From the IMG/VR virus record IMGVR_UViG_3300017971_000185, positions 310,001 to 374,000 of that record: DNA of 64,000 nt; one strand, given 5' to 3'. Each line of letters begins with the position of its first letter. The first letter of the stretch is position 1. Shown piece after piece: positions 2,309 to 59,072 of this stretch. The notes below the pieces were generated by a model. The model saw nothing but the letters and a program-made list of their open reading frames with translations, made no database searches and had not been told where the DNA came from. The position numbers and the translations under genes are program-made.

Positions 2309-2998
2309 TCACTCGATAGGAGCCCAGGCCCACTCTGCGGTAGCCGTGAATTTCGCCCGGAAGGGGAACGTGATCTGTCGCGTGTCTGCCCTGATTCGTC
2401 TGGGAGGAACGGCGAGGTTGTCCCAATCGGGGAACAGGATGTCCCAAGCCCCTACGTTGCTCTCTTGAGCCATCCAGTCTTCCCAAGTCTCCTCATCATC
2501 GATCACGCGCCCTACTCTCGGCCACTCGGCGTGCTCGATGATCACCCAGGACCAGACCTTGGGGAAGTGCCGGTTGAGCACCATGGTCTCTAGCTTGCTC
2601 TCGATGATGAGAAAGTCACGTCCGCTTACCCGCGTCCGCATGGCTCGCCGCATGCTTTTCAGGGGGTAGCGGATCACTCCAGTCGTGTAGGCTGCGACGG
2701 TGCCCTTCACATCGCGTCGTTCGTGCTGAGCTTTTTCTGCGTCATCGGCAAGATTCTGAAAAGTGCTCTTGTCGGCTTGCGTCACTTGCCGAACAATGTA
2801 GTTGTCTGCGTCGTTCGCCGCAGCGATCAGAGCCTTGACCAGCTTGGGAAGGATGGTTCGCGCCTGATCTTCGAATACTTCTTTCGCGAGCGACTGGAGC
2901 GCCGAAGGAGGGGCTGCCTTCTTGAGCAAAGGAAGCAAGCCTTCCCGAAGTTGCGGTTGTTGCTGGGCGAGCCGGAGAATGCTGCGTCGTAGGCTCAT
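2309..2998 (-). CDS. hypothetical protein with N-terminal LR..I.RLA...P.L...LLPLLK motif
   Basis: 229-aa ORF; motif shared with 60716..61114. Confidence 0.6.
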   Translation of the reverse strand: MSLRRSILRLAQQQPQLREGLLPLLKKAAPPSALQSLAKEVFEDQARTILPKLVKALIAAANDADNYIVRQVTQADKSTFQNLADDAEKAQHERRDVKGTVAAYTTGVIRYPLKSMRRAMRTRVSGRDFLIIESKLETMVLNRHFPKVWSWVIIEHAEWPRVGRVIDDEETWEDWMAQESNVGAWDILFPDWDNLAVPPRRIRADTRQITFPFRAKFTATAEWAWAPIE

Positions 2999-3514
2999 GG
3001 TCCTACTTCACGATCTTCCATAGCCTACCTATCGAGAGGCTGTTTGGGGTAAGGTGTTCTATCATGGTGTTGGAAGCACTACCGAAGACGGAGCGCATTC
3101 GGCGGCTGATAAAGAAGGCGGATTTGGCAGTTGAGCTTGCGAGGCTGTCGCTCCCAGCGCACTCGAGTCTTGAGGAAGTTGAGGAGAAAGCTCTCAAGTA
3201 CATGAGTCTCACGAACAAGGAGATTCAGGCTCGGATTCGGAAGAAGCAGAAGTAACGTGGATTCGTGGGCGTGTGTGTAAGATGAGAGATGCGTGGGACG
3301 TGGAGGGCGAGGAGTCCGTAGCTCTCGTGAAGTGGTGTGACAAGCGGAAGTGCCTCCGAATCGGCGTACCACAAGGCGGCTGCCGAGGAGCTAGCGGTGC
3401 AAACGGGAGAGCAGAAACCCCGATAACGCTCGGGGCCGGCGGCCCGTCTCTACCCGTTTGCGAGGTCGGCTTTGGACGGAGCCGAGGTCAACCTATCCTC
3501 GCTCCAGTATACCC

Positions 3515-3543
3515 TTGCATTTGCTCAGGGAGTCGTGTAGAAG
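3515..3543 (+). promoter_or_regulatory. sigma70-like promoter of the Ile2/Arg/Val tRNA operon
   Basis: TTGCAT-N17-TAGAAG. Confidence 0.55.
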
Positions 3544-3559
3544 GTGATCAGAGGTCAAC

Positions 3560-3658
3560 ATGTTCATCCTCAGCCGTCGAATATCCAAGCCTGTCGCCCC
3601 CGTTCCCAGCGGTATGGGTGTCGTCGTCGTGCGCTTGGCGTTTGACAGGCGACGGTGA
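3560..3658 (+). CDS. leader peptide MFILSRRISKPVAPVPSGMGVVVVRLAFDRRR
   Basis: SD GAGGT; contains ATA, GTC x4, GTT, AGG and CGG, matching the downstream CAT(Ile2), GAC, CCT and CCG anticodons. Confidence 0.7.
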   Translation: MFILSRRISKPVAPVPSGMGVVVVRLAFDRRR

Positions 3659-3691
3659 ACGCCAGGCTCAAGGACCGCGGAACGGGCGTAT

Positions 3692-3765
3692 AGGCCCGTA
3701 GCTCAGTCGGTTAGAGCGTGGGGCTCATAACCCCGTGGTCCTCGGTTCAATCCCGAGCGGGCCTA
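3692..3765 (+). tRNA. tRNA with CAT anticodon, probably tRNA-Ile2 (lysidine type)
   Basis: Cloverleaf AGGCCCG/CGGGCCT, loop CT-CAT-AA; initiator and elongator Met tRNAs are present elsewhere. Confidence 0.85.
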
Positions 3766-3780
3766 CGAAAAGCATTCAAG

Positions 3781-3854
3781 GAGGACGTATCGGCCCAGTC
3801 TCCTAAACTGGCAAGCCGTAATGGATGATGGGGGTTCGAGTCCCTCCGTCCTCA
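3781..3854 (+). tRNA. atypical tRNA-Arg(CCT) lacking a normal D arm
   Basis: Acceptor GAGGACG/CGTCCTC, anticodon arm CCAGT-CTCCTAA-ACTGG, T arm GGGGG-TTCGAGT-CCCTC; D region reduced to TATCGGC. Confidence 0.65.
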
Positions 3855-3862
3855 CTATACCG

Positions 3863-3888
3863 AGGTTCAAATCCTGCCGGGGACGCCA
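3863..3888 (+). pseudogene. orphan 3' tRNA fragment (T loop, 3' acceptor strand, CCA)
   Basis: AGGTTCAAATCCTGCCGGGGACGCCA with no matching 5' half nearby. Confidence 0.5.
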
Positions 3889-3897
3889 AGGAGAAAC

Positions 3898-4170
3898 ATG
3901 AAGAGACGCACGTTCATAGGCAGCCTGTTCGCGGCCCTTGGAGCGATCTGCTTCCCTTGGAAGAGACGCAAGCGCAAGAAGTCTCTAGAGGAGATCAAGC
4001 AGGAGATCCTCATGGAGTACTTTCGTTCTCCTCAAGCACGAGGGAAACTGGCTGTAGGTATGGCTTTCCCTCTCCGAATGCGTCGCAACTATGCAGAGAT
4101 TGGCAAGAGGATCTTTCTTGTGGAGGAATTGCCATCGGGCGCTCTCCCCTTCTACGACAGGGAGCCATGA
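3898..4170 (+). CDS. small protein: Tat-like N-terminus plus a segment resembling a phage major capsid protein N-terminus
   Basis: SD AAGGAG; MKRRTFIGSLFAALG followed by ARGKLAVGMAFPLRMRRNY...FLVEELPSGALPFYD. Confidence 0.5.
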   Translation: MKRRTFIGSLFAALGAICFPWKRRKRKKSLEEIKQEILMEYFRSPQARGKLAVGMAFPLRMRRNYAEIGKRIFLVEELPSGALPFYDREP

Positions 4171-4357
4171 AAGAGCACTGTACCAGACATCTCCGAAAAG
4201 GGATCAAGAAGCCAGCCGTGTACATCCTCGAAGGCGGGCTATGCGAGACTTGTTGGATCGATTGGTGGATCGAAGGACTGCACATCGAGAACCCGAGAGA
4301 ACGAGCCAAAGTACGTCGAGAGACAAAAGCTGCCTTAAGGAGAAGACGCAAGCGAAA

Positions 4358-4434
4358 GGCCGGGTAGCTCAGATGGTTAGAGCACCATCCCGACACGGTG
4401 GGGGTCCTCGGTTCGATCCCGAGCCCGGTCACCA
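4358..4434 (+). tRNA. tRNA-Val(GAC)
   Basis: Cloverleaf with CCA; loop CC-GAC-AC (C33). Confidence 0.9.
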
Positions 4435-4435
4435 C

Positions 4436-4510
4436 GTTCCTGTAGCTCAGCCCGGACAGAGCGTCACGTTCCGAACGTGAGGGGCGTAGGTTCAAATCCT
4501 ACCAGGAACG
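4436..4510 (+). tRNA. tRNA-Arg(CCG)
   Basis: GTTCCTG/CAGGAAC; loop TT-CCG-AA. Confidence 0.92.
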
Positions 4511-5559
4511 CAAGTATACTTTCTGCCGAAACTCACGTAGACAAGAGCGTGTGGAGACGACACAAACCTCTTCAACGAGCTACTGTAGGAGGTAAGCTAT
4601 GGGCATGCCCCAAAAGGGTTCCCGTACGCGCTTGAAGGATGAAGATGCCGTCGTGTCCCTCTTCGTCATGCGCGACGCCAGCTTCTAGTTGTACGTTTCC
4701 GCCATCGGGAGGCACACGGAATTCTTGCTCCTCTCCGAACCGGCTGCCCGCTTCGCCCGGCTCACCCGGCTCGCCTCCAAGGTCCGCCTGGATCTTGCCT
4801 TCGCCGCCCGGCGTGAGAATGACATCATCAGGATGGGATTCTTGTGGGTTTGTGATCTCTGGCACGTTCCACTCTACCAACCAGAGGTATCGGGATTTGC
4901 CAGCATGGCGTGGCGCTCAGCCACACGTCGGGAGCGTCTGAGGCATCGTGGCTTGCCGTCGATGGGTTTGCCGTCGAGGTACACGAGGTAGTCGTCTGTT
5001 CGCTGTTGTTTCACCGGACGAATTTCGTAGCCCTTCCACGTGTACGTGTACGACGTGTTTCCTTTATCCAGGCGAGGGACCCACGTAGCCATGCTTCTCT
5101 CAAGAGAACACAATACGCTCAGTACCGATCCAGATGGTGTAGAATAGGGCAGTGGACGATTACCGCAAGATCGACGCAGCGGTTCCCGTAGCGAGGAAGA
5201 AGAACCTCACCATCCGCATGGCTTGCTTCAGCGAAGAAGAAGCACGAGCACTAGAGGACTACGCGAAGAACAAGTACCCGGATGTTTCGTTCCAATTCAC
5301 TTGGCTCACGTTTTTCGATCCCAATGAAACAGACGCTAACAACTGAAGAAGTGCTACGACAGCGCGTTCAAGGTGCCATCCGCGAGGAGATTCGGTTGCG
5401 CATAGTATGGGAAAATGCGGTAGAGCGTGCCAAGACAGGCGCTCCTGGTGCGCGGCATGCCGAAGAGGACGCTGCGTATGCCCTCGGCCTAGCTCGCAAA
5501 CAAGTGAACGAGCAAATGCGGCAGTTGATGGAGCACTGTCGCCGGAGGTACGGATACGG

Positions 5560-6489
5560 CTAGTAGAGGTTTCTGATCTCAGGCGCAGCCGTGAACAGGC
5601 GGCAATGCGTTCCCGGTGTATAGTACCGTAACTGCAAACCGTTGCGAGCTAGTGCATGGTGGACGGGAGGATCCGAGATGCGCGTCGTGTTCTGCTGACA
5701 GGCGAACGTCGTTGTCCACGTTGCGTTGAAGGACGGGATGTACTCGTAAGCGGTTCGCGTCACACGGAAGGCTGAGCGGATGGTCTTGATGATTTCGACG
5801 TGGTGAGCATCGAGGGGACCGCTCAGGCGGATGCCTCCTGTCTGTGCGGCAAAGATGCCTCTGTCACGCAGTTTCCCGCCAATGGCCGAGAAGAAGTCCT
5901 TGGTGAACAACCGCTCAGAGAGATTGTTGCTGTCGCCCGTGTCATCGTAGGGCTCAGTGAGATCGGAGATGATCACGTTCCAAGTCTGGTTCTCGTTGAG
6001 CACAGTGGACGCGTCGGAGATGCGGACGGTAACGCGCTCGTCCTCGAATGCGCCGTGTGTCCATTCGGGAAAGAGCACCTTGAAGGTCTCGATCATGTCT
6101 TCATCGATCTCGACCAAGCAGACTTCTTTCACGTCGGGCCACTTGAGCACTTCGCGGAGAGCACAGCCATCGCCGCCACCGAGGATGAGCACACGCCCGA
6201 TGTTCTGGGCCATGACCATGGCCGGATGCACGAGCATGTCGTGGTAGATATACTCGTCACTCTCCGCAACCTGGATGCGCCCGTCTAGAATCAGAGTGCG
6301 TCCGAGGTCCGCGAAGTCTGCTAGCTGGATGAGTTGGTACTCGCTTTGCTTTTCGTAGAGGAGATCGCGGATACCCCACAGAGCGAAGAAGGATTCGCTC
6401 TCTGCCTCAAGAAACCAGCGCGGCTGTCGAGTCTCCAGCAAGTGCGGCAGAGATTCCAACGGACTAAAGATTCGGTTGGCTGGTATCAC
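5560..6489 (-). CDS. speE: polyamine aminopropyltransferase (spermidine synthase family)
   Basis: QSEYQ, LILDGRIQ, YHDMLVHP, VLILGGGDG, VEID and DLTEP motifs; GTG start overlaps the upstream TGA. Confidence 0.92.
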   Translation of the reverse strand: MIPANRIFSPLESLPHLLETRQPRWFLEAESESFFALWGIRDLLYEKQSEYQLIQLADFADLGRTLILDGRIQVAESDEYIYHDMLVHPAMVMAQNIGRVLILGGGDGCALREVLKWPDVKEVCLVEIDEDMIETFKVLFPEWTHGAFEDERVTVRISDASTVLNENQTWNVIISDLTEPYDDTGDSNNLSERLFTKDFFSAIGGKLRDRGIFAAQTGGIRLSGPLDAHHVEIIKTIRSAFRVTRTAYEYIPSFNATWTTTFACQQNTTRISDPPVHHALARNGLQLRYYTPGTHCRLFTAAPEIRNLY

Positions 6490-6691
6490 CAACGGAGTCC
6501 CTCCTTGCGCCGTTGTTCTTGCTCCTCGCAGACGCTCCGAAGCTGGCTCCAATTGCGGATGACGTTGAGATCGTCCAGGGCTTCTTTGGTTTCCTGGGTC
6601 ATCGTGGCTTGGAAAGGCAGCCGATCGTCGTTGCGGAAGCTCTCGCTCGCGTAGTTGAAGGTCGTGATGTTTTGCCGTCTCACACTCTACC

Positions 6692-14310: not shown

Positions 14311-14653
14311 TCGGTCGAGAGGATGAGGAGATCGCAGCCGCAAGGCTGAGGAAAGTCCGGGCTCCGTAGAGCAGCGTGCTTGGGAAATCCAAGTCGGGGC
14401 GACCCGCAGGAAAGTGCCGCAGAAAGCAAACCGCCGATGGCCTTCGGGCACAGGCAAGGGTGAAAGGGTGGGGTAAGAGCCCACCGGGTTCCTGGCGACA
14501 GGGATCGCATGGTAAACCCCACGCGGAGCAAGACAAACAGAGAGCGCTGAAGTTGCTCGCCTAGCTCTCGGGTTGTCGCAAAGATGAATGATCGCCACCT
14601 GGCAAGGGCAACCGACCCAGGGACAGAACCCGGCTTACGACCCTCTCGGCCGA
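14311..14653 (+). ncRNA. rnpB: RNase P RNA (bacterial type A)
   Basis: GAGGAAAGTCCGGGCTCC, GGAAAGTGCCGCAGAAA, GGTAAACCCCAC..GGAGCAAG and ACAGAACCCGGCTTA; P1 TCGGTCGAGAGG/CCTCTCGGCCGA. Confidence 0.95.
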
Positions 14654-23277: not shown

Positions 23278-23306
23278 TTGACTTTGGCTCTGTCTGTCCG
23301 TACAAC
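23278..23306 (+). promoter_or_regulatory. sigma70-like promoter of the Pro/Arg/Leu/Tyr tRNA operon
   Basis: TTGACT-N17-TACAAC. Confidence 0.7.
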
Positions 23307-23326
23307 TGCATCTGAGGCGGAAAGCC

Positions 23327-23446
23327 ATGACACAAATGCGGAACACACTCGGGTTGAGCACCTACCAGTCATTACTGGCGGGGAGGCTCCCCTTGCGTCC
23401 GTATTTGCGCCCGCTGCCGCCACCCCGACTTAGGGGCGCCCTCTAG
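23327..23446 (+). CDS. leader peptide MTQMRNTLGLSTYQSLLAGRLPLRPYLRPLPPPRLRGAL
   Basis: 24 of 39 codons are Leu, Pro, Arg or Tyr, the amino acids of the downstream tRNAs. Confidence 0.75.
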   Translation: MTQMRNTLGLSTYQSLLAGRLPLRPYLRPLPPPRLRGAL

Positions 23447-26093: not shown

Positions 26094-26163
26094 AAGCAAA
26101 GGACCCTGTACTTCTCCATTGGTTCTCAAAGCAAAGGACCCTGTACTTCTCCATTGGTTCTCA
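26094..26163 (+). repeat. 35-nt tandem duplication inside a degenerate small ORF
   Basis: AAGCAAAGGACCCTGTACTTCTCCATTGGTTCTCA x2. Confidence 0.85.
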
Positions 26164-26281
26164 GAGGGTACGGGCACGCCGAACCTCCCGAGAGAGGGCT
26201 TCTCGTGGAAAATGACGAAGAGTGGGGGCATCCTCACGGGGCCTTACTTCGGCTGTGTCAACCACGAAGAGTGATTATCGA

Positions 26282-32405: not shown

Positions 32406-32434
32406 TTGACTTCCAGCAGGAAGAGGCGTACACC
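32406..32434 (+). promoter_or_regulatory. sigma70-like promoter of the Thr/Asp/Val tRNA operon
   Basis: TTGACT-N17-TACACC. Confidence 0.6.
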
Positions 32435-32482
32435 CGTTCTAGTCGCTCCCCTTGGCAGGACAGCGACGGAAACATTCACGCC

Positions 32483-32578
32483 ATGACGAAACGCACCACA
32501 ACAACAGCTATGCTCAGTGCCCGAGTGGCCCTGCATGGCTTTGTACGTCCAAATATGGACGATACGACCCCGTGTTGA
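32483..32578 (+). CDS. leader peptide MTKRTTTTAMLSARVALHGFVRPNMDDTTPC
   Basis: 7 Thr codons (ACG, ACC, ACA) plus GAC/GAT and GTA/GTG. Confidence 0.75.
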   Translation: MTKRTTTTAMLSARVALHGFVRPNMDDTTPC

Positions 32579-38845: not shown

Positions 38846-38973
38846 GCCGGACATGACCCGTGGGGGTCACCCGATTTTCCATCGGTAACGATCCGACAGC
38901 ACCACTCGCCCCTCAAGAGGGGCTCACGGATGATGTCCACAAGCACTGCCAGGTTCGACTCCTGGGTCCGGCG
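38846..38973 (+). ncRNA. tRNA mimic type A1 (open acceptor, module inserted in the variable loop)
   Basis: GCCGGAC/GTCCGGC; D, anticodon and T arms; GACA..CACTC-hairpin-..TGTC-CACAAGC insert. Confidence 0.75.
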
Positions 38974-38974
38974 C

Positions 38975-39104
38975 TGAAGCAACCAACCAGACAGGGCTCA
39001 CACGCAAAGTAGCTCATTGGGTAGAGCATCGGTATCGCAAACCGAGGGTAGCTGGTTCAAGTCCAGTCCTTGCAACAAACAAGCTCTTCAACTCGGTTGC
39101 TTCA
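38975..39104 (+). ncRNA. Y-like RNA type B1 (whole tRNA mimic nested inside the module)
   Basis: Outer stem TGAAGCAACC/GGTTGCTTCA; loop ATCGCAA. Confidence 0.75.
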
Positions 39105-39144: not shown

Positions 39145-39272
39145 GGCGGACCAGGCCCGGTGGGGGCCAACCGACTTACACTCGGCAACGATCCGACACC
39201 AACACTCGCCTCTTTCGAGGCTCCTCGGTTGAATGTCCACAAGCTAGCCTGGTTCGATTCCAGGGTCCGCCT
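39145..39272 (+). ncRNA. tRNA mimic type A2
   Basis: Paralog of A1 with compensatory changes (GGCGGAC/GTCCGCC; CCTGG/CCAGG). Confidence 0.75.
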
Positions 39273-39274
39273 CT

Positions 39275-39404
39275 GAAGCGACCAAACCCGAAAGGGCTCA
39301 CAAGCAAAGAAGCTCATTTGGCTGAGCGTCTCGATCATAACGAGAAGGTAGCTGGTTCAACTCCAGTCCTTGCACTCTGTTCAGCCCCTCAACTCGGTCG
39401 CTTC
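39275..39404 (+). ncRNA. Y-like RNA type B2
   Basis: Paralog of B1; GAAGCGACC/GGTCGCTTC; loop ATCATAA. Confidence 0.75.
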
Positions 39405-39765: not shown

Positions 39766-39769
39766 GTTT

Positions 39770-39853
39770 TTCTCCCCGAGCGACGGCGCTTTCGCCAACT
39801 CCGTCAGGACCGGAAGGTAGCAGCGGTAACGGAGGACCGGGTGCTCGGGGGAA
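39770..39853 (+). ncRNA. ffs: small SRP RNA (4.5S-like)
   Basis: Helix-8 motif GTCAGGACCGGAAGGTAGCAGC inside a hairpin closed by CCCCGAGC/GCTCGGGG. Confidence 0.85.
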
Positions 39854-39905
39854 CGTTTCACCGAGCCGGGGTCGTCGGTGGGCGCTTATCGCCGCGGAGA
39901 GGCGT

Positions 39906-40085
39906 CTGATCCGGTTCCGGGGTTTGGAGTCGCGTCCAAACCTCGGGCCGGGGAACCCCGCATGATGATTTTCCTTGACCCTTTCTTGGAGGTTCGGCAC
40001 ACTCAACACATCGTAATCCCGAGGGCGGTCGCCCCATCTACGGAACCGGCCTCGAATCTCTAACCCCAACCAGAGCACGGATCAG
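39906..40085 (+). ncRNA. 6S-like RNA candidate
   Basis: 180-nt rod: CTGATCCG/CGGATCAG, GGGGTT/AACCCC, central bubble, GGGCCGG/CCGGCCT. Confidence 0.4.
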
Positions 40086-40737: not shown

Positions 40738-41114
<377 letters not shown>

Positions 41115-43609: not shown

Positions 43610-43638
43610 TTGACAACGGCCTGGAGACCAGCTACAAG
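43610..43638 (+). promoter_or_regulatory. sigma70-like promoter of the tRNA-Lys operon
   Basis: TTGACA-N17-TACAAG. Confidence 0.7.
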
Positions 43639-43647
43639 GTCTTAGTC

Positions 43648-43680
43648 ATGTCCGGTATCCGTCTGAAACGCAAGACCTAG
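43648..43680 (+). CDS. leader peptide MSGIRLKRKT (probably leaderless mRNA)
   Basis: Contains both AAA and AAG; pairs with the 5' end of tRNA-Lys. Confidence 0.65.
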   Translation: MSGIRLKRKT

Positions 43681-47468: not shown

Positions 47469-47497
47469 TTGACGGGCCGCCTAACGTCCGCTACAAG
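47469..47497 (+). promoter_or_regulatory. sigma70-like promoter of the tRNA-Glu/Asn operon
   Basis: TTGACG-N17-TACAAG; same GCTACAAGG..GTCATG layout as the Lys operon. Confidence 0.7.
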
Positions 47498-47506
47498 GGT
47501 GTTGTC

Positions 47507-47593
47507 ATGTTGAGTCGTCTGAATACCAGCCCGCGCAGGCCCGCTCTCGTTGAACGAGAGCGCGAGGCTGAAGTACGCCTGCGCGGGGAGTAA
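47507..47593 (+). CDS. leader peptide MLSRLNTSPRRPALVEREREAEVRLRGE
   Basis: 5 Glu codons (GAA and GAG) in the 3' half. Confidence 0.75.
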   Translation: MLSRLNTSPRRPALVEREREAEVRLRGE

Positions 47594-56883: not shown

Positions 56884-56912
56884 TTGACAAGGGCTCAGAG
56901 GGCGCGTAGAGT
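56884..56912 (+). promoter_or_regulatory. sigma70-like promoter of the Arg/Ser/Gly/Ala/Trp/Cys tRNA operon
   Basis: TTGACA-N17-TAGAGT. Confidence 0.75.
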
Positions 56913-56927
56913 CTCCCTGAGGTCAAA

Positions 56928-57080
56928 ATGTTTACCCCAGTCCAAACCATCGTTGAGAACGCACGCTACGCAGCACCCGCCATTGCGGCTGCCGCCGCGG
57001 GATCGTGTGCCTCCGATTGGTCAGGACTCGGTACACGGCCCAGTAGTGGTGCTCTGTCCAGGCAGAGACGCTCCGTTTAG
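56928..57080 (+). CDS. leader peptide MFTPVQTIVENARYAAPAIAAAAAGSCASDWSGLGTRPSSGALSRQRRSV
   Basis: SD GAGGT; 11 Ala, 7 Ser, 4 Gly, plus TGT, TGG and AGG/AGA. Confidence 0.75.
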   Translation: MFTPVQTIVENARYAAPAIAAAAAGSCASDWSGLGTRPSSGALSRQRRSV

Positions 57081-58100: not shown

Positions 58101-58172
58101 GCGTGTGTAGCTCAGTTGGCAGAGCATCAGCTTCCATGCTGAGGGTCGCGGGTTCGATCCCCGCCACATGCT
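58101..58172 (+). tRNA. tRNA-Gly-type body with a 6-nt anticodon loop (probably a defective Gly(CCC))
   Basis: TCAGC-TTCCAT-GCTGA. Confidence 0.65.
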
Positions 58173-58191
58173 CGAAAGGAAGAACATGAAC

Positions 58192-58559: not shown

Positions 58560-58934
58560 ATGGCACAGATCACCAAAGAACAGGTCATTGACTATCTGGG
58601 GGCCCTCTCGCCTTCGGAAATGGCTATCCTCATCGAGAACCTGGAAGAGACGTGGGGCATGGAGATGTCCCGGCCAACTCAGCAAGCACCGAAGGTCGAG
58701 CAAGAGAAGGAGGAAGAACAGACGGAATTCGAGGTCATACTTGAGAGTTTCGGAGACAAGAAGATCGACGTGATCAAGACCGTTCGCCAGGAGAAGCCGG
58801 GGATGGGTCTCAAGGAAGCAAAGGAGTTTGTCGAGTCTGCGCCGGTTACGATCGGTGAGGCGCTCTCAAAGGAGGAAGCAGAGGAAGCCAAGGCCAAGCT
58901 GGAGGAGGCAGGCGCAACGATCACGATCAAGTAA
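58560..58934 (+). CDS. rplL: 50S ribosomal protein L7/L12
   Basis: EEQTEFEVIL..GDKKIDVIK.VR...GLKEAKEFVESAP..SKEEAE..KAKLEEAGA. Confidence 0.95.
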   Translation: MAQITKEQVIDYLGALSPSEMAILIENLEETWGMEMSRPTQQAPKVEQEKEEEQTEFEVILESFGDKKIDVIKTVRQEKPGMGLKEAKEFVESAPVTIGEALSKEEAEEAKAKLEEAGATITIK

Positions 58935-59013: not shown

Positions 59014-59072
59014 AGGGACGTAGCTCAATGGAAGAGTGCCGGAAGCTGCGGGTTCGAATCCCGTCGTCTCCA
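59014..59072 (+). ncRNA. anticodon-arm-less tRNA-Ala-like RNA
   Basis: Acceptor with G3:U70 and A73; D and T arms present; only GCCGGAAGCT between them. Confidence 0.65.

Follow-up and report, generated by a model that had tools for sequence, protein, structure and literature searches.

The tRNA unit and its leader ORF

We analysed a window of 64,000 nucleotides (positions 310,001 to 374,000 of the IMG/VR record IMGVR_UViG_3300017971_000185) from a 497-kb phage. Near its start lies a promoter-like site followed by a 32-codon ORF, 33 nt upstream of a tRNA with anticodon CAT, and after this tRNA come an aberrant Arg(CCT) element, two small genes, tRNA-Val(GAC) and tRNA-Arg(CCG). The initial annotation had noticed that the codons ATA, GTC, AGG and CGG of this ORF correspond to the anticodons found downstream, and all the sequence features on which this rested were confirmed at their positions (Table 1). 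The tRNAs were called with ARAGORN and with the tRNA model of Rfam. The relatives compared here are G001 (230 kb), G002 (619 kb), G003, L027 and the group L010, L011 and L014, and they were found through the 90-aa neighbour gene and through a motif of the Glu/Asn leader. IMG/VR scans with flanking proteins and DNA patterns mostly returned the same phage, the scan with GTCGTCGT...AGGCGACGGTGA gave only chance hits in coding DNA, and a single metagenome scan returned only the phage itself. The phage is present in sediment and seawater samples.

Table 1. Features of the CAT/Arg(CCT)/Val/Arg unit and of the other leader-tRNA units in the window (window coordinates)
Position	Strand	Feature	Observations
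3515-3543	+	sigma-70-like promoter, TTGCAT-17 nt-TAGAAG	Same position: TTGCAA-17-TAGAAC in L010/L011, TTGACA/TATTCT in L014; counterparts in G001 (TTGACT-17-TATGTT) and G002 (TTGACG-17-TATATC); predicted from sequence
3550-3554	+	Shine-Dalgarno-like AGAGG, 5 nt before the ATG	CAGAGGTCA invariant in window, L010, L011 and L014; GGAGA in G001 and AGGAC in G002 at the same place
3560-3658	+	leader ORF, 32 codons plus TGA (3656-3658)	Cognate codons ATA 3581-3583, GTC 3593-3595 and 3620-3628 (followed by GTG 3629-3631), GTT 3602-3604, AGG 3647-3649, CGG 3653-3655; AGG CGA CGG TGA at 3647-3658; CCCGTTCC at 3599-3606; listed as a 32-aa gene in public gene calls on other copies
3659-3691	+	spacer	GGAACGGG at 3679-3686, present only in window and L014; anti-acceptor ACGGGC at 3682-3687; CGGGC a few nt upstream of the tRNA kept in all six versions
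3692-3766	+	tRNA with anticodon CAT, best read as tRNA-Ile2	68.4 bits; GCCCGT at 3694-3699 in the acceptor strand
3781-3854	+	aberrant tRNA-Arg(CCT)-like element, no D arm, 18-nt variable region	35.7 bits; not called by ARAGORN; fold z = -2.0, extending the anticodon stem by CGGC:GCCG; variant G3783A breaks an acceptor pair
3848-3889	+	remnant of the ancestral canonical tRNA-Arg(CCT)	5' acceptor GTCCTC, 9 unrelated nt, then T arm 3' part, acceptor 3' strand and CCA; shares 3848-3853 with the element above; from alignment with the canonical tRNAs of L010, L011, L014 and G001
3898-4170	+	90-aa protein gene of unknown function, conserved in the clade	Homologues at 41-64% identity, no Pfam domain; same position between the tRNAs in L010, L011 and L014
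4167-4367	+	66-aa ORF whose stop codon lies inside tRNA-Val (tRNA nt 8-10)	Same 10-nt overlap in L010 (gene 5279-5500, tRNA 5491-5567)
4358-4434	+	tRNA-Val(GAC)	ARAGORN and Rfam
4436-4511	+	tRNA-Arg(CCG)	ARAGORN and Rfam
23278-23446	+	promoter-like site plus leader ORF (23327-23446) of the Pro/Arg(ACG)/Pro/Pro/Leu/Leu/Tyr unit	17 of 38 codons cognate; counterparts in G001 and G002
32406-32578	+	promoter-like site plus leader ORF (32483-32578) of the Thr x3/Asp/Val(TAC) unit	11 of 30 cognate; counterpart in G002
39962-40063	+	leader ORF of the Ile(GAT)/CAT/CAT/His/Phe unit	8 of 32 cognate; no promoter match found; the weakest unit
43610-43680	+	promoter-like site plus 10-codon leader (43648-43680) of the Lys(CTT)/Lys(TTT) unit	Followed by a hairpin plus UUUU; counterpart in G002
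47469-47593	+	promoter-like site plus leader ORF (47507-47593) of the Glu x2/Asn x2 unit	11-nt segment at the ORF end complementary to near-identical segments inside the ORF and in the spacer; counterparts in G001, L027, G002 and G003
56884-57080	+	promoter-like site plus 50-codon leader (56928-57080) of the Arg(TCT)/Ser x4/Gly x3/Ala x3-4/Trp/Cys unit	26 of 49 cognate; ends 5 nt before the first tRNA; counterparts in G001, G002 and G003

Regarding the probability of such a match by chance, ATA is 6% of the Ile codons in the long ORFs of the phage, and only 0.6-1.1% of the 28-36-codon ORFs in the genome contain all four codons. In this leader 9 of 31 codons are cognate to the unit against 8.5% expected (P about 9e-4). 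As signs of translation, the Shine-Dalgarno-like motif, start, stop and frame are kept in the six versions compared (window, L010, L011, L014, G001 and G002) and the indels are multiples of three. In the five aligned versions the invariant residues include the Ile encoded by ATA, three Val and the terminal three Arg, while most of the others vary.

Codon content of leaders across units and phages

Eight tRNA units in this phage have a short leader ORF each, most of them with a sigma-70-like promoter. Taken together, 82 of 223 leader codons (37%) are read by the tRNAs of the leader's own unit, whereas the other two frames give 13% and 16% and the reverse strand 18%. The true pairing of leaders and units is the unique best of 40,320 permutations, and the most enriched unit of every leader is its own (8 of 8). 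We chose the leader ORFs by a near-mechanical rule, although after having seen them, and the units were delimited by the next promoter or leader. Nevertheless, the result holds when only the first contiguous tRNA cluster of each unit is used, and also when only exact Watson-Crick codons are counted. The codon specificity within the Arg family is loose, since all leaders are Arg-rich near the C terminus.

The same test gave the same result in two related phages, with 69 of 170 codons and the unique best of 720 permutations in G001, and 89 of 206 codons and the unique best of 40,320 in G002. Matching leaders also occur in three more lineages, namely G003, L027 and L010/L011/L014. In an out-of-sample check, the Gln unit outside the window had the same promoter type and an 8-codon leader with CAA CAA CAG. 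The promoter pattern TTGACN-17-TA[CG]A[ACG]N occurs only 11 times in 497 kb, and 6 of these sites lie directly before leader-tRNA units. However, an unrelated phage tRNA array (L006) showed no such leaders, so this is a feature of the clade and not a general property of phage tRNA arrays.

G002 represents a natural experiment, because its equivalent unit has only tRNA(CAT) and Arg(CCT). Its leader keeps ATA, has three AGG and ends AGG CGA AGG TGA, with no CGG and no GTC run. In this phage Val(GAC) sits in the Thr/Asp/Val unit, whose leader has gained GTC GTC GTG GCC GTC GTA, and Arg(CCG) sits in the Pro/Arg unit, whose leader has two CGG. Thus, leader content tracks tRNA content.

Identity of the tRNAs and folding of the leader RNA

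The interpretation given in the initial annotation was only partly supported. Its core idea, that the codons of the leader correspond to the downstream tRNAs, holds, although the support is genome-wide and comparative. The Ile2 identity proposed for the CAT tRNA is also supported. ATA is kept in all six leader versions, and the tRNA at the same position in G001, after the homologous leader, carries anticodon TAT. The CAT tRNA is 72% identical to this tRNA-Ile(TAT), 71% to the tRNA-Ile(GAT) of the phage and 74% to an E. coli tRNA annotated Ile (the nearest E. coli matches are annotated tRNA-Ile), against 56-65% to the other three CAT tRNAs of the window. Its acceptor AGGCCCG, paired with CGGGCCT, has the C4-G69 and C5-G68 pairs which E. 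coli TilS uses in tRNAs of the ileX/ileY type. The lysidine modification of the CAU anticodon, the charging with isoleucine and therefore the decoding of ATA are inferred from the sequence, and they would depend on a TilS of the host, because in the search for a phage TilS the only PP-loop hit was a PAPS-reductase/DUF3440 protein.

In contrast, function of the D-armless Arg(CCT), which the initial annotation took to be supported by the AGG codon, is not supported. Relatives have a canonical tRNA-Arg(CCT) at that place (65-69 bits), so the AGG codon is inherited rather than evidence for this element. The element keeps a seven-pair acceptor stem, an anticodon arm with a 7-nt CCT loop and a T arm with a TTCRA loop. 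However, only 4 nt stand where the model expects the 15 nt of the D arm with its G18 G19 loop, and about 18 nt separate the anticodon and T arms instead of the 4-5-nt variable region of the Arg class. It is a scrambled derivative lying next to a remnant of the canonical gene that it replaced, no relative shares it, and one natural variant puts an A.C mismatch in its acceptor stem. Mitochondrial tRNAs lacking the D arm, such as metazoan mt-tRNA-Ser(AGY), likewise keep an acceptor stem, a canonical anticodon loop and a T arm, and the element is predicted to have an extended anticodon helix, but it differs from them in its 18-nt variable region and in the neighbouring remnant. We also considered a permuted tmRNA at 3830-3891, which was rejected because the match reached 18.7 bits against a 47-bit threshold and ARAGORN found no tmRNA.

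Regarding the hairpin switch, the initial annotation had proposed that GGAACGGG pairs with CCCGTTCC or, alternatively, ACGGGC with the tRNA acceptor strand, and had set folding under ribosome constraints as a check. In the constrained folding of this phage the switch behaves as proposed. The anti-acceptor hairpin persists (P 0.90-0.99) with no ribosome or with one held at ATA or GTC, and it opens (P 0.28-0.02) only with a ribosome at AGG/CGA/CGG or at the stop. Nevertheless, the CCCGTTCC:GGAACGGG pairing is missing in L010, L011 and G001, and the ribosome dependence was not reproduced in orthologues or in other units. An 8-bp perfect complement between ORF and spacer occurs in 6.5% of shuffled ORFs, and the anti-acceptor duplex is no stronger than in shuffles (p = 0.19), so these hairpins are weaker evidence, and we rejected anti-acceptor pairing as a general mechanism.

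The stretch 3540-3770 folds better than shuffles (z = -2.6). The consensus fold pairs the start region with the stop region and GUCGUC with GGCGAC, and AGGCGACGGTGA is invariant at the nucleotide level in five versions. However, RNAalifold on five versions gave a covariation term of +2.4, which means no support from covariation. No terminator-like site was found in 2900-4900, no intrinsic terminator (hairpin with a U tract) lies between leader and tRNA in this unit, and only the Lys unit and the Gln unit of G001 have a hairpin followed by UUUU. The Glu/Asn unit has a conserved three-segment arrangement. No T-box was found with Rfam at gathering thresholds over the window, nor at E up to 1 over 3400-4600. 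DNA contigs, which we also compared, showed only identical copies and tRNAs of other organisms.

Leader ORFs as putative sensors of tRNA supply

The explanation that we favour, with fair confidence, is that the ORF at 3560-3658 is a translated leader of a promoter-proximal transcription unit, and one member of a family of leaders that precede tRNA units in a clade of huge phages. The most likely role is a sensor of tRNA supply read by the ribosome. In this view, how fast a ribosome passes ATA, GTC, AGG and CGG would depend on the availability of those charged tRNAs, and its position or dwell time on the leader would set how much of the downstream tRNA is made or matured. The analysis itself establishes the correspondence between codons and tRNAs, its frame specificity, the conservation of start, stop and frame, and the co-variation of leader content with tRNA content across phages. 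On the other hand, that the ORFs are translated, that stalling is the signal and that tRNA shortage raises tRNA output are inferences drawn without transcript, ribosome or peptide evidence, and loss of regulation on changing the codons is only expected from the model. The output step has only candidates at present: hairpins at or just after the stop codon acting on transcription, sequestration of the 5' acceptor strand of the first tRNA, or direct occlusion of the tRNA 5' end by the ribosome. A further difficulty is that the model does not say how a leader would control tRNAs lying after intervening protein genes.

Among other explanations, coincidence is for practical purposes refuted. The match was noticed post hoc, and the window offers many tRNA clusters and frames in which to look, but the permutation results in three phages, the frame specificity and the changes of the codons in step with tRNA content speak against it. 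It is also very improbable that the ORFs encode small functional peptides whose composition resembles the nearby tRNAs for another reason. Gene callers do list the 32-aa product, and the leaders share Arg-rich C termini. However, the peptide is poorly conserved apart from the Ile, Val and Arg positions (47-53% identity in L014 and G001, and five non-synonymous against two synonymous codon changes between window and L010), a profile search of 1.84 billion proteins found only the leader's own cluster, and the leaders of different units are unrelated in sequence.

An untranslated structured 5' leader, for instance a processing or stability element of the tRNA precursor or a protein-binding hairpin, with an incidental reading frame, would agree with the fold and the invariant stretches described above. 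Nevertheless we regard it as quite unlikely, since there is no compensatory covariation and structure alone does not explain why cognate codons are enriched only in the ORF frame, why start, stop and frame persist through indels, or why unrelated leaders each match their own tRNAs. A somewhat less remote, although still doubtful, possibility is that the leaders are translated and do sense tRNAs but with another sign or purpose. A ribosome reaching the end of the leader would then be needed to free or chaperone the 5' strand of the first tRNA, and tRNA maturation would be tied to ongoing translation, as a checkpoint or positive feedback, rather than raised by shortage. The constrained folding of this phage agrees with this. 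Moreover, in the Arg(TCT) unit the last sense codons pair with the tRNA 5' strand and the stop is 5 nt from the tRNA in three phages, and ORFs rich in His or Ile codons read straight into tRNA-His and tRNA-Ile. However, the switch is not seen in orthologues, the anti-acceptor pairing is not stronger than chance, and positive feedback would affect only the first tRNA and would not explain why the codons are matched so specifically to the tRNAs of each unit.

The closest known systems are the ribosome-mediated transcription attenuators of amino-acid operons (trpL, hisL, leuL, pheL, thrL, ilvL; PMC1183508, PMC3082878), in which a short ORF directly after the promoter is enriched in codons whose decoding speed reports the supply of particular charged tRNAs, the peptide itself is poorly conserved, and GC-rich self-complementary segments overlap the ORF. 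Here, however, the genes downstream are tRNA genes and not biosynthetic or synthetase genes, several kinds of codons are combined in one leader, one set per tRNA in the unit, instead of a run for one amino acid, no hairpin-plus-U-tract terminator precedes the first tRNA in this unit, and the setting is a phage. In tnaC-type control a ribosome held at the end of a leader ORF blocks Rho loading (PMC8429421). In our unit the most conserved cognate codons, AGG CGA CGG, are the last three before the stop, and therefore a slow ribosome would sit at the end of the ORF and cover the sequence just downstream, but tnaC senses free tryptophan through the nascent peptide and not codon supply. T-box riboswitches sense uncharged tRNA directly through a specifier codon and would also link the status of a tRNA to the expression of translation-related genes through a codon-like element in a 5' leader, although they regulate synthetase and amino-acid genes and not tRNA genes. 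The leaders described here have a Shine-Dalgarno-like motif, ATG, stop and a conserved frame, and many codons rather than one specifier.

Phage tRNAs are usually discussed as constitutive helpers for codon usage or as spares against host tRNA-cleaving defences, and how their expression is controlled is largely unknown. Full-text literature searches found no description of such leaders. The rule has practical uses as well, because leader content predicts which tRNAs belong to a transcription unit and what they decode, and here it argues that the CAT tRNA reads ATA. Leader ORFs matched codon by codon to the tRNAs behind them would mean that tRNA supply itself is sensed and regulated, using a logic known so far only for amino-acid and synthetase genes. 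We consider it more likely than not that this clade of huge phages regulates its tRNA genes unit by unit in this way, each unit reading out, through ribosome speed on a matched set of codons, whether the cell already has enough of those tRNAs, and adjusting their production. This would be the first attenuator-like control of tRNA genes by their own codons, and also a built-in way for a phage to respond to host tRNA shortage or tRNA-cleaving defences.

The leader ORF and its conservation

The window is bases 310001-374000 of a single-contig virus record of 497,194 bp with 57.7% GC. This is a huge phage with a nearly complete tRNA set, whose 46 tRNAs found by ARAGORN all lie between 310 and 376 kb. 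Identical or near-identical copies occur in at least 24 public contigs, which come from sediment and seawater metagenomes. The phage also carries a bacterial-type RNase P RNA and a small SRP RNA (see the table), and a phage-borne RNase P RNA next to about 46 tRNA genes may bear on how the tRNA precursors are processed.

Every feature that the initial annotation had described at the leader and its downstream tRNAs was found in its place. In the long ORFs of the phage ATA is rare (6% of Ile codons), AGG and CGG make up 10% and 23% of Arg codons respectively, and GTC is the commonest Val codon. Only 0.6-1.1% of the genome ORFs of 28-36 codons hold all four codons, which is suggestive but, for a match noticed post hoc, not decisive on its own.

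Coordinates of the features in the window (unless the genome is indicated)
Position	Strand	Feature	Details
707-781	minus	tRNA-like gene	38.3 bits; 9-nt anticodon loop; called Asn(att) by ARAGORN
872-900	minus	Promoter-like site of the 707-781 gene	TTGACA-17-TAGAGT; a 4-codon ORF also lies upstream of the gene
3560-3658		Leader ORF	32 codons plus TGA; ATA once, GTC four times (three in a row, followed by GTG); ends AGG CGA CGG TGA
3692-3766		tRNA(CAT)	Acceptor stem AGGCCCG/CGGGCCT, with C4-G69 and C5-G68
3781-3854		tRNA-like element without D arm	35.7 bits with the Rfam tRNA model; CCT anticodon loop
3783		Variant G3783A (contig L041)	A.C mismatch in the acceptor stem of the D-armless element
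3848-3853		Surviving 5' acceptor strand of the canonical tRNA-Arg(CCT)	GTCCTC
3862-3889		Surviving 3' part of the canonical tRNA-Arg(CCT)	T-arm 3' part, acceptor 3' strand and CCA
3898-4170		Small ORF	90 aa
4167-4367		Small ORF	66 aa; its stop codon TAG is nt 8-10 of tRNA-Val(GAC); the same 10-nt overlap occurs in contig L010
4358-4434		tRNA-Val(GAC)
4414		Variant C4414T (contig L041)	Changes the conserved T-loop C56 of tRNA-Val(GAC)
4436-4511		tRNA-Arg(CCG)
5560-6552	minus	Spermidine/spermine-synthase-like gene	Syntenic with relatives
14315-14653		RNase P RNA	Full-length, bacterial class A; 247 bits
about 26100-26180		Tandem duplication of about 36 nt	AAGCAAAGGACCCTGTACTTCTCCATTGGTTCTCA; upstream of tRNA-Leu(CAA)
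about 38850-39002 and about 39150-39302		Two similar stretches of about 150 nt	Precede tRNA-Ala(CGC) and a CAT tRNA; each ends in a T-arm-like CCAGGTTCGAYTCCWGG followed by an acceptor-like strand
39767-39859		Small SRP RNA	57.7 bits
40088-40120		Short ORF	ATT ATT ATC in its last codons; reads without a stop into tRNA-Ile(GAT) (40121)
40738-40786		Short ORF	CAT CAC CAT in its last codons; reads without a stop into tRNA-His (40787)
58101-58173		tRNA	58.8 bits; 6-nt anticodon loop; called tRNA-??? (cc) by ARAGORN
58560-58934		Ribosomal protein L7/L12-like gene	Among the tRNAs; ends at the first base of tRNA-Ala(GGC)
59014-59072		Truncated tRNA-like element	44.2 bits; acceptor, D and T arms, anticodon arm reduced to about two pairs; just after tRNA-Ala(GGC)
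genome 474002-475249		PAPS-reductase/DUF3440 protein

Homologues of the 90-aa gene (51-64% identity) led us to four related contigs (L010, L011, L014 and L015), in which the order is the same: tRNA(CAT), tRNA-Arg(CCT), the two small genes, tRNA-Val(GAC) and tRNA-Arg(CCG). The upstream sequence is otherwise unalignable there, yet a promoter-like site, CAGAGGTCA, ATG TTC, an in-frame ATA, a GTY GTC GTC GTS run and AGG CGA CGG TGA are conserved, and L014 differs by in-frame indels only. A more distant phage of 230 kb (G001) has a 32-codon leader with ATA, three GTC, four CGG, AGG and the same final AGG CGA CGG TGA, located 39 nt before its first tRNA. In a protein alignment of the five versions the invariant residues are M1, one Arg, the ATA-encoded Ile, two Pro, three Val and the terminal three Arg, whereas the rest of the peptide varies, with 47-53% identity for L014 and G001.

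Codon matching between leaders and tRNA units

When the ORFs and promoter-like sites upstream of each tRNA cluster were listed, other short ORFs appeared just downstream of TTGACA-17-TACAAG-like sites, and their codons match the tRNAs behind them. Pro/Arg/Leu/Tyr codons precede the Pro, Arg(ACG), Pro, Pro, Leu, Leu, Tyr unit; Thr/Asp/Val codons precede Thr x3, Asp, Val(TAC); Lys codons precede Lys x2; Glu/Asn codons precede Glu x2, Asn x2; Ala/Ser/Gly/Cys/Trp/Arg codons precede Arg(TCT), Ser x4, Gly x3, Ala, Trp, Cys; and Met/Ile/Phe/His codons precede Ile(GAT), CAT, CAT, His, Phe. We then predicted that the Gln tRNAs outside the window would have a Gln leader, and actually the same promoter type is followed there by an 8-codon ORF with CAA CAA CAG.

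Regarding the formal tests, 82 of 223 leader codons (37%) are read by the tRNAs of their own unit, whereas the other two frames give 13% and 16% and the reverse strand 18%. The true leader-unit pairing is the single best of 40,320 permutations, and the most enriched unit of each leader is its own (8 of 8). The result was the same when only the first contiguous cluster per unit, or only exact Watson-Crick codons, were counted. Furthermore, the promoter pattern occurs 11 times in the whole genome and 6 of these lie directly before such units.

The same test in G001 gave 69 of 170 cognate codons and the unique best of 720 pairings. A conserved motif of the Glu/Asn leader found two further phages, G002 (619 kb, 55 tRNAs) and G003, and G002 gave 89 of 206 and the unique best of 40,320. 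G003 and L027, another lineage, carry matching Glu/Asn, Gln and Arg/Ser/Gly/Ala leaders; L027 also has a Pfam-annotated L12 gene in its tRNA array. An unrelated phage with a dense tRNA array (L006) shows nothing similar.

The most telling case is G002, whose equivalent unit holds only tRNA(CAT) and tRNA-Arg(CCT). Its leader keeps ATA, has AGG three times and ends AGG CGA AGG TGA, with no CGG and no GTC run. In this phage tRNA-Val(GAC) belongs to the Thr/Asp/Val unit, whose leader carries GTC GTC GTG GCC GTC GTA, and tRNA-Arg(CCG) belongs to the Pro/Arg unit, whose leader has two CGG. Thus, leader content follows tRNA membership.

Identity of the CAT tRNA and the D-armless element

The counterpart of the CAT tRNA after the homologous leader in G001 has the same acceptor and D arm but the anticodon TAT, which reads ATA. 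The CAT tRNA is 72% identical to that tRNA, 71% to the tRNA-Ile(GAT) of the phage and 56-65% to the other three CAT tRNAs, one of which (40343) looks like an initiator tRNA in view of the E. coli initiator sequence. The best E. coli matches are annotated tRNA-Ile, and ATA is kept in all six leader versions, at slightly shifted but always in-frame positions. Therefore the Ile2 identity is well supported, although the modification cannot be seen in sequence and the phage has no TilS.

Relatives have a canonical tRNA-Arg(CCT) (65-69 bits) abutting the CAT tRNA. In the window only its 5' acceptor strand and its 3' part survive, and the 44 nt between them are replaced by 9 unrelated nt. Upstream of this remnant the D-armless element forms a separate tRNA-like fold, whose 3' acceptor strand re-uses the same GTCCTC and whose anticodon stem differs from the orthologues at three pairs, each still able to pair. 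It has a canonical anticodon loop and T arm and an 18-nt variable region, and it would be the only CCT anticodon in the genome. However, no relative shares it, ARAGORN rejects it, and a natural variant from another sample (contig L041) carries a mismatch in its acceptor stem. The initial annotation had taken the leader as support for the function of this element, but the conserved AGG codon predates the rearrangement and so says nothing about it. Among the other unusual elements, the tRNA with a 6-nt anticodon loop is probably Gly(CCC) by its position among the Gly tRNAs, and the two similar stretches of about 150 nt may be a repeated non-coding RNA or tRNA-derived elements.

RNA structure and the probable role of the leaders

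No terminator-like site lies between leader and tRNA in this unit. The consensus fold of five versions pairs the start region with the stop region, GUCGUC with GGCGAC, and CGGGC with the GCCCG of the tRNA, but without any covariation (term +2.4). The initial annotation had proposed two mutually exclusive pairings, and folding the window's leader under ribosome masks does reproduce them. With no ribosome, or with one held at ATA or at the GTC run, the anti-acceptor hairpin ACGGGC:GCCCGU has a probability of 0.90-0.99 and CCCGUUCC:GGAACGGG is below 0.07, whereas with a ribosome at AGG/CGA/CGG or at the stop CCCGUUCC:GGAACGGG rises to 0.57-0.79 and the anti-acceptor falls to 0.28-0.02. Nevertheless, several results weaken this switch as a mechanism: GGAACGGG is absent from L010, L011 and G001, an 8-bp complement arises in 6.5% of shuffled ORFs, the anti-acceptor duplex is no better than in shuffles, and the switch is not seen in orthologues or in other units. 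The interpretation of the initial annotation is partly supported: the correspondence of codons and tRNAs holds and the Ile2 identity is supported, but the function of the D-armless element is not supported and the switch folds as predicted in this phage but is not conserved.

Other units hint at other arrangements. The Lys unit has a hairpin plus UUUU whose 5' arm holds the Lys codons, and the Glu/Asn unit has an 11-nt segment at the ORF end that can pair with near-identical segments inside the ORF or in the spacer, invariant in three lineages. Both Gln leaders have strong hairpins immediately after the stop, different in sequence but the same in position. The Arg(TCT) leader ends 5 nt before the tRNA in three phages, with its last sense codons paired to the tRNA 5' strand. 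Finally, the ORFs rich in His or Ile codons that read straight into tRNA-His and tRNA-Ile, the former with a His-rich counterpart in G002, may be a second, nested kind of leader.

The system would work like a leader-peptide attenuator, but it lacks the terminator of that family in this unit and would regulate a different class of genes, and it is not a T-box according to the Rfam searches. Full-text literature searches found no description of leader ORFs matched to downstream tRNA genes, in phages or in cells. Our analysis shows the correspondence itself, its frame specificity, the conservation of SD, start, stop and frame, and the co-variation with tRNA content; on the other hand, that the leaders are translated, that stalling is the signal and the sign of the response are inferred without any expression data, which is the main uncertainty. 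Taking this into account, these ORFs are most likely translated leaders that report the supply of the tRNAs encoded behind them, with the logic of trp/his-type attenuators applied to tRNA genes.
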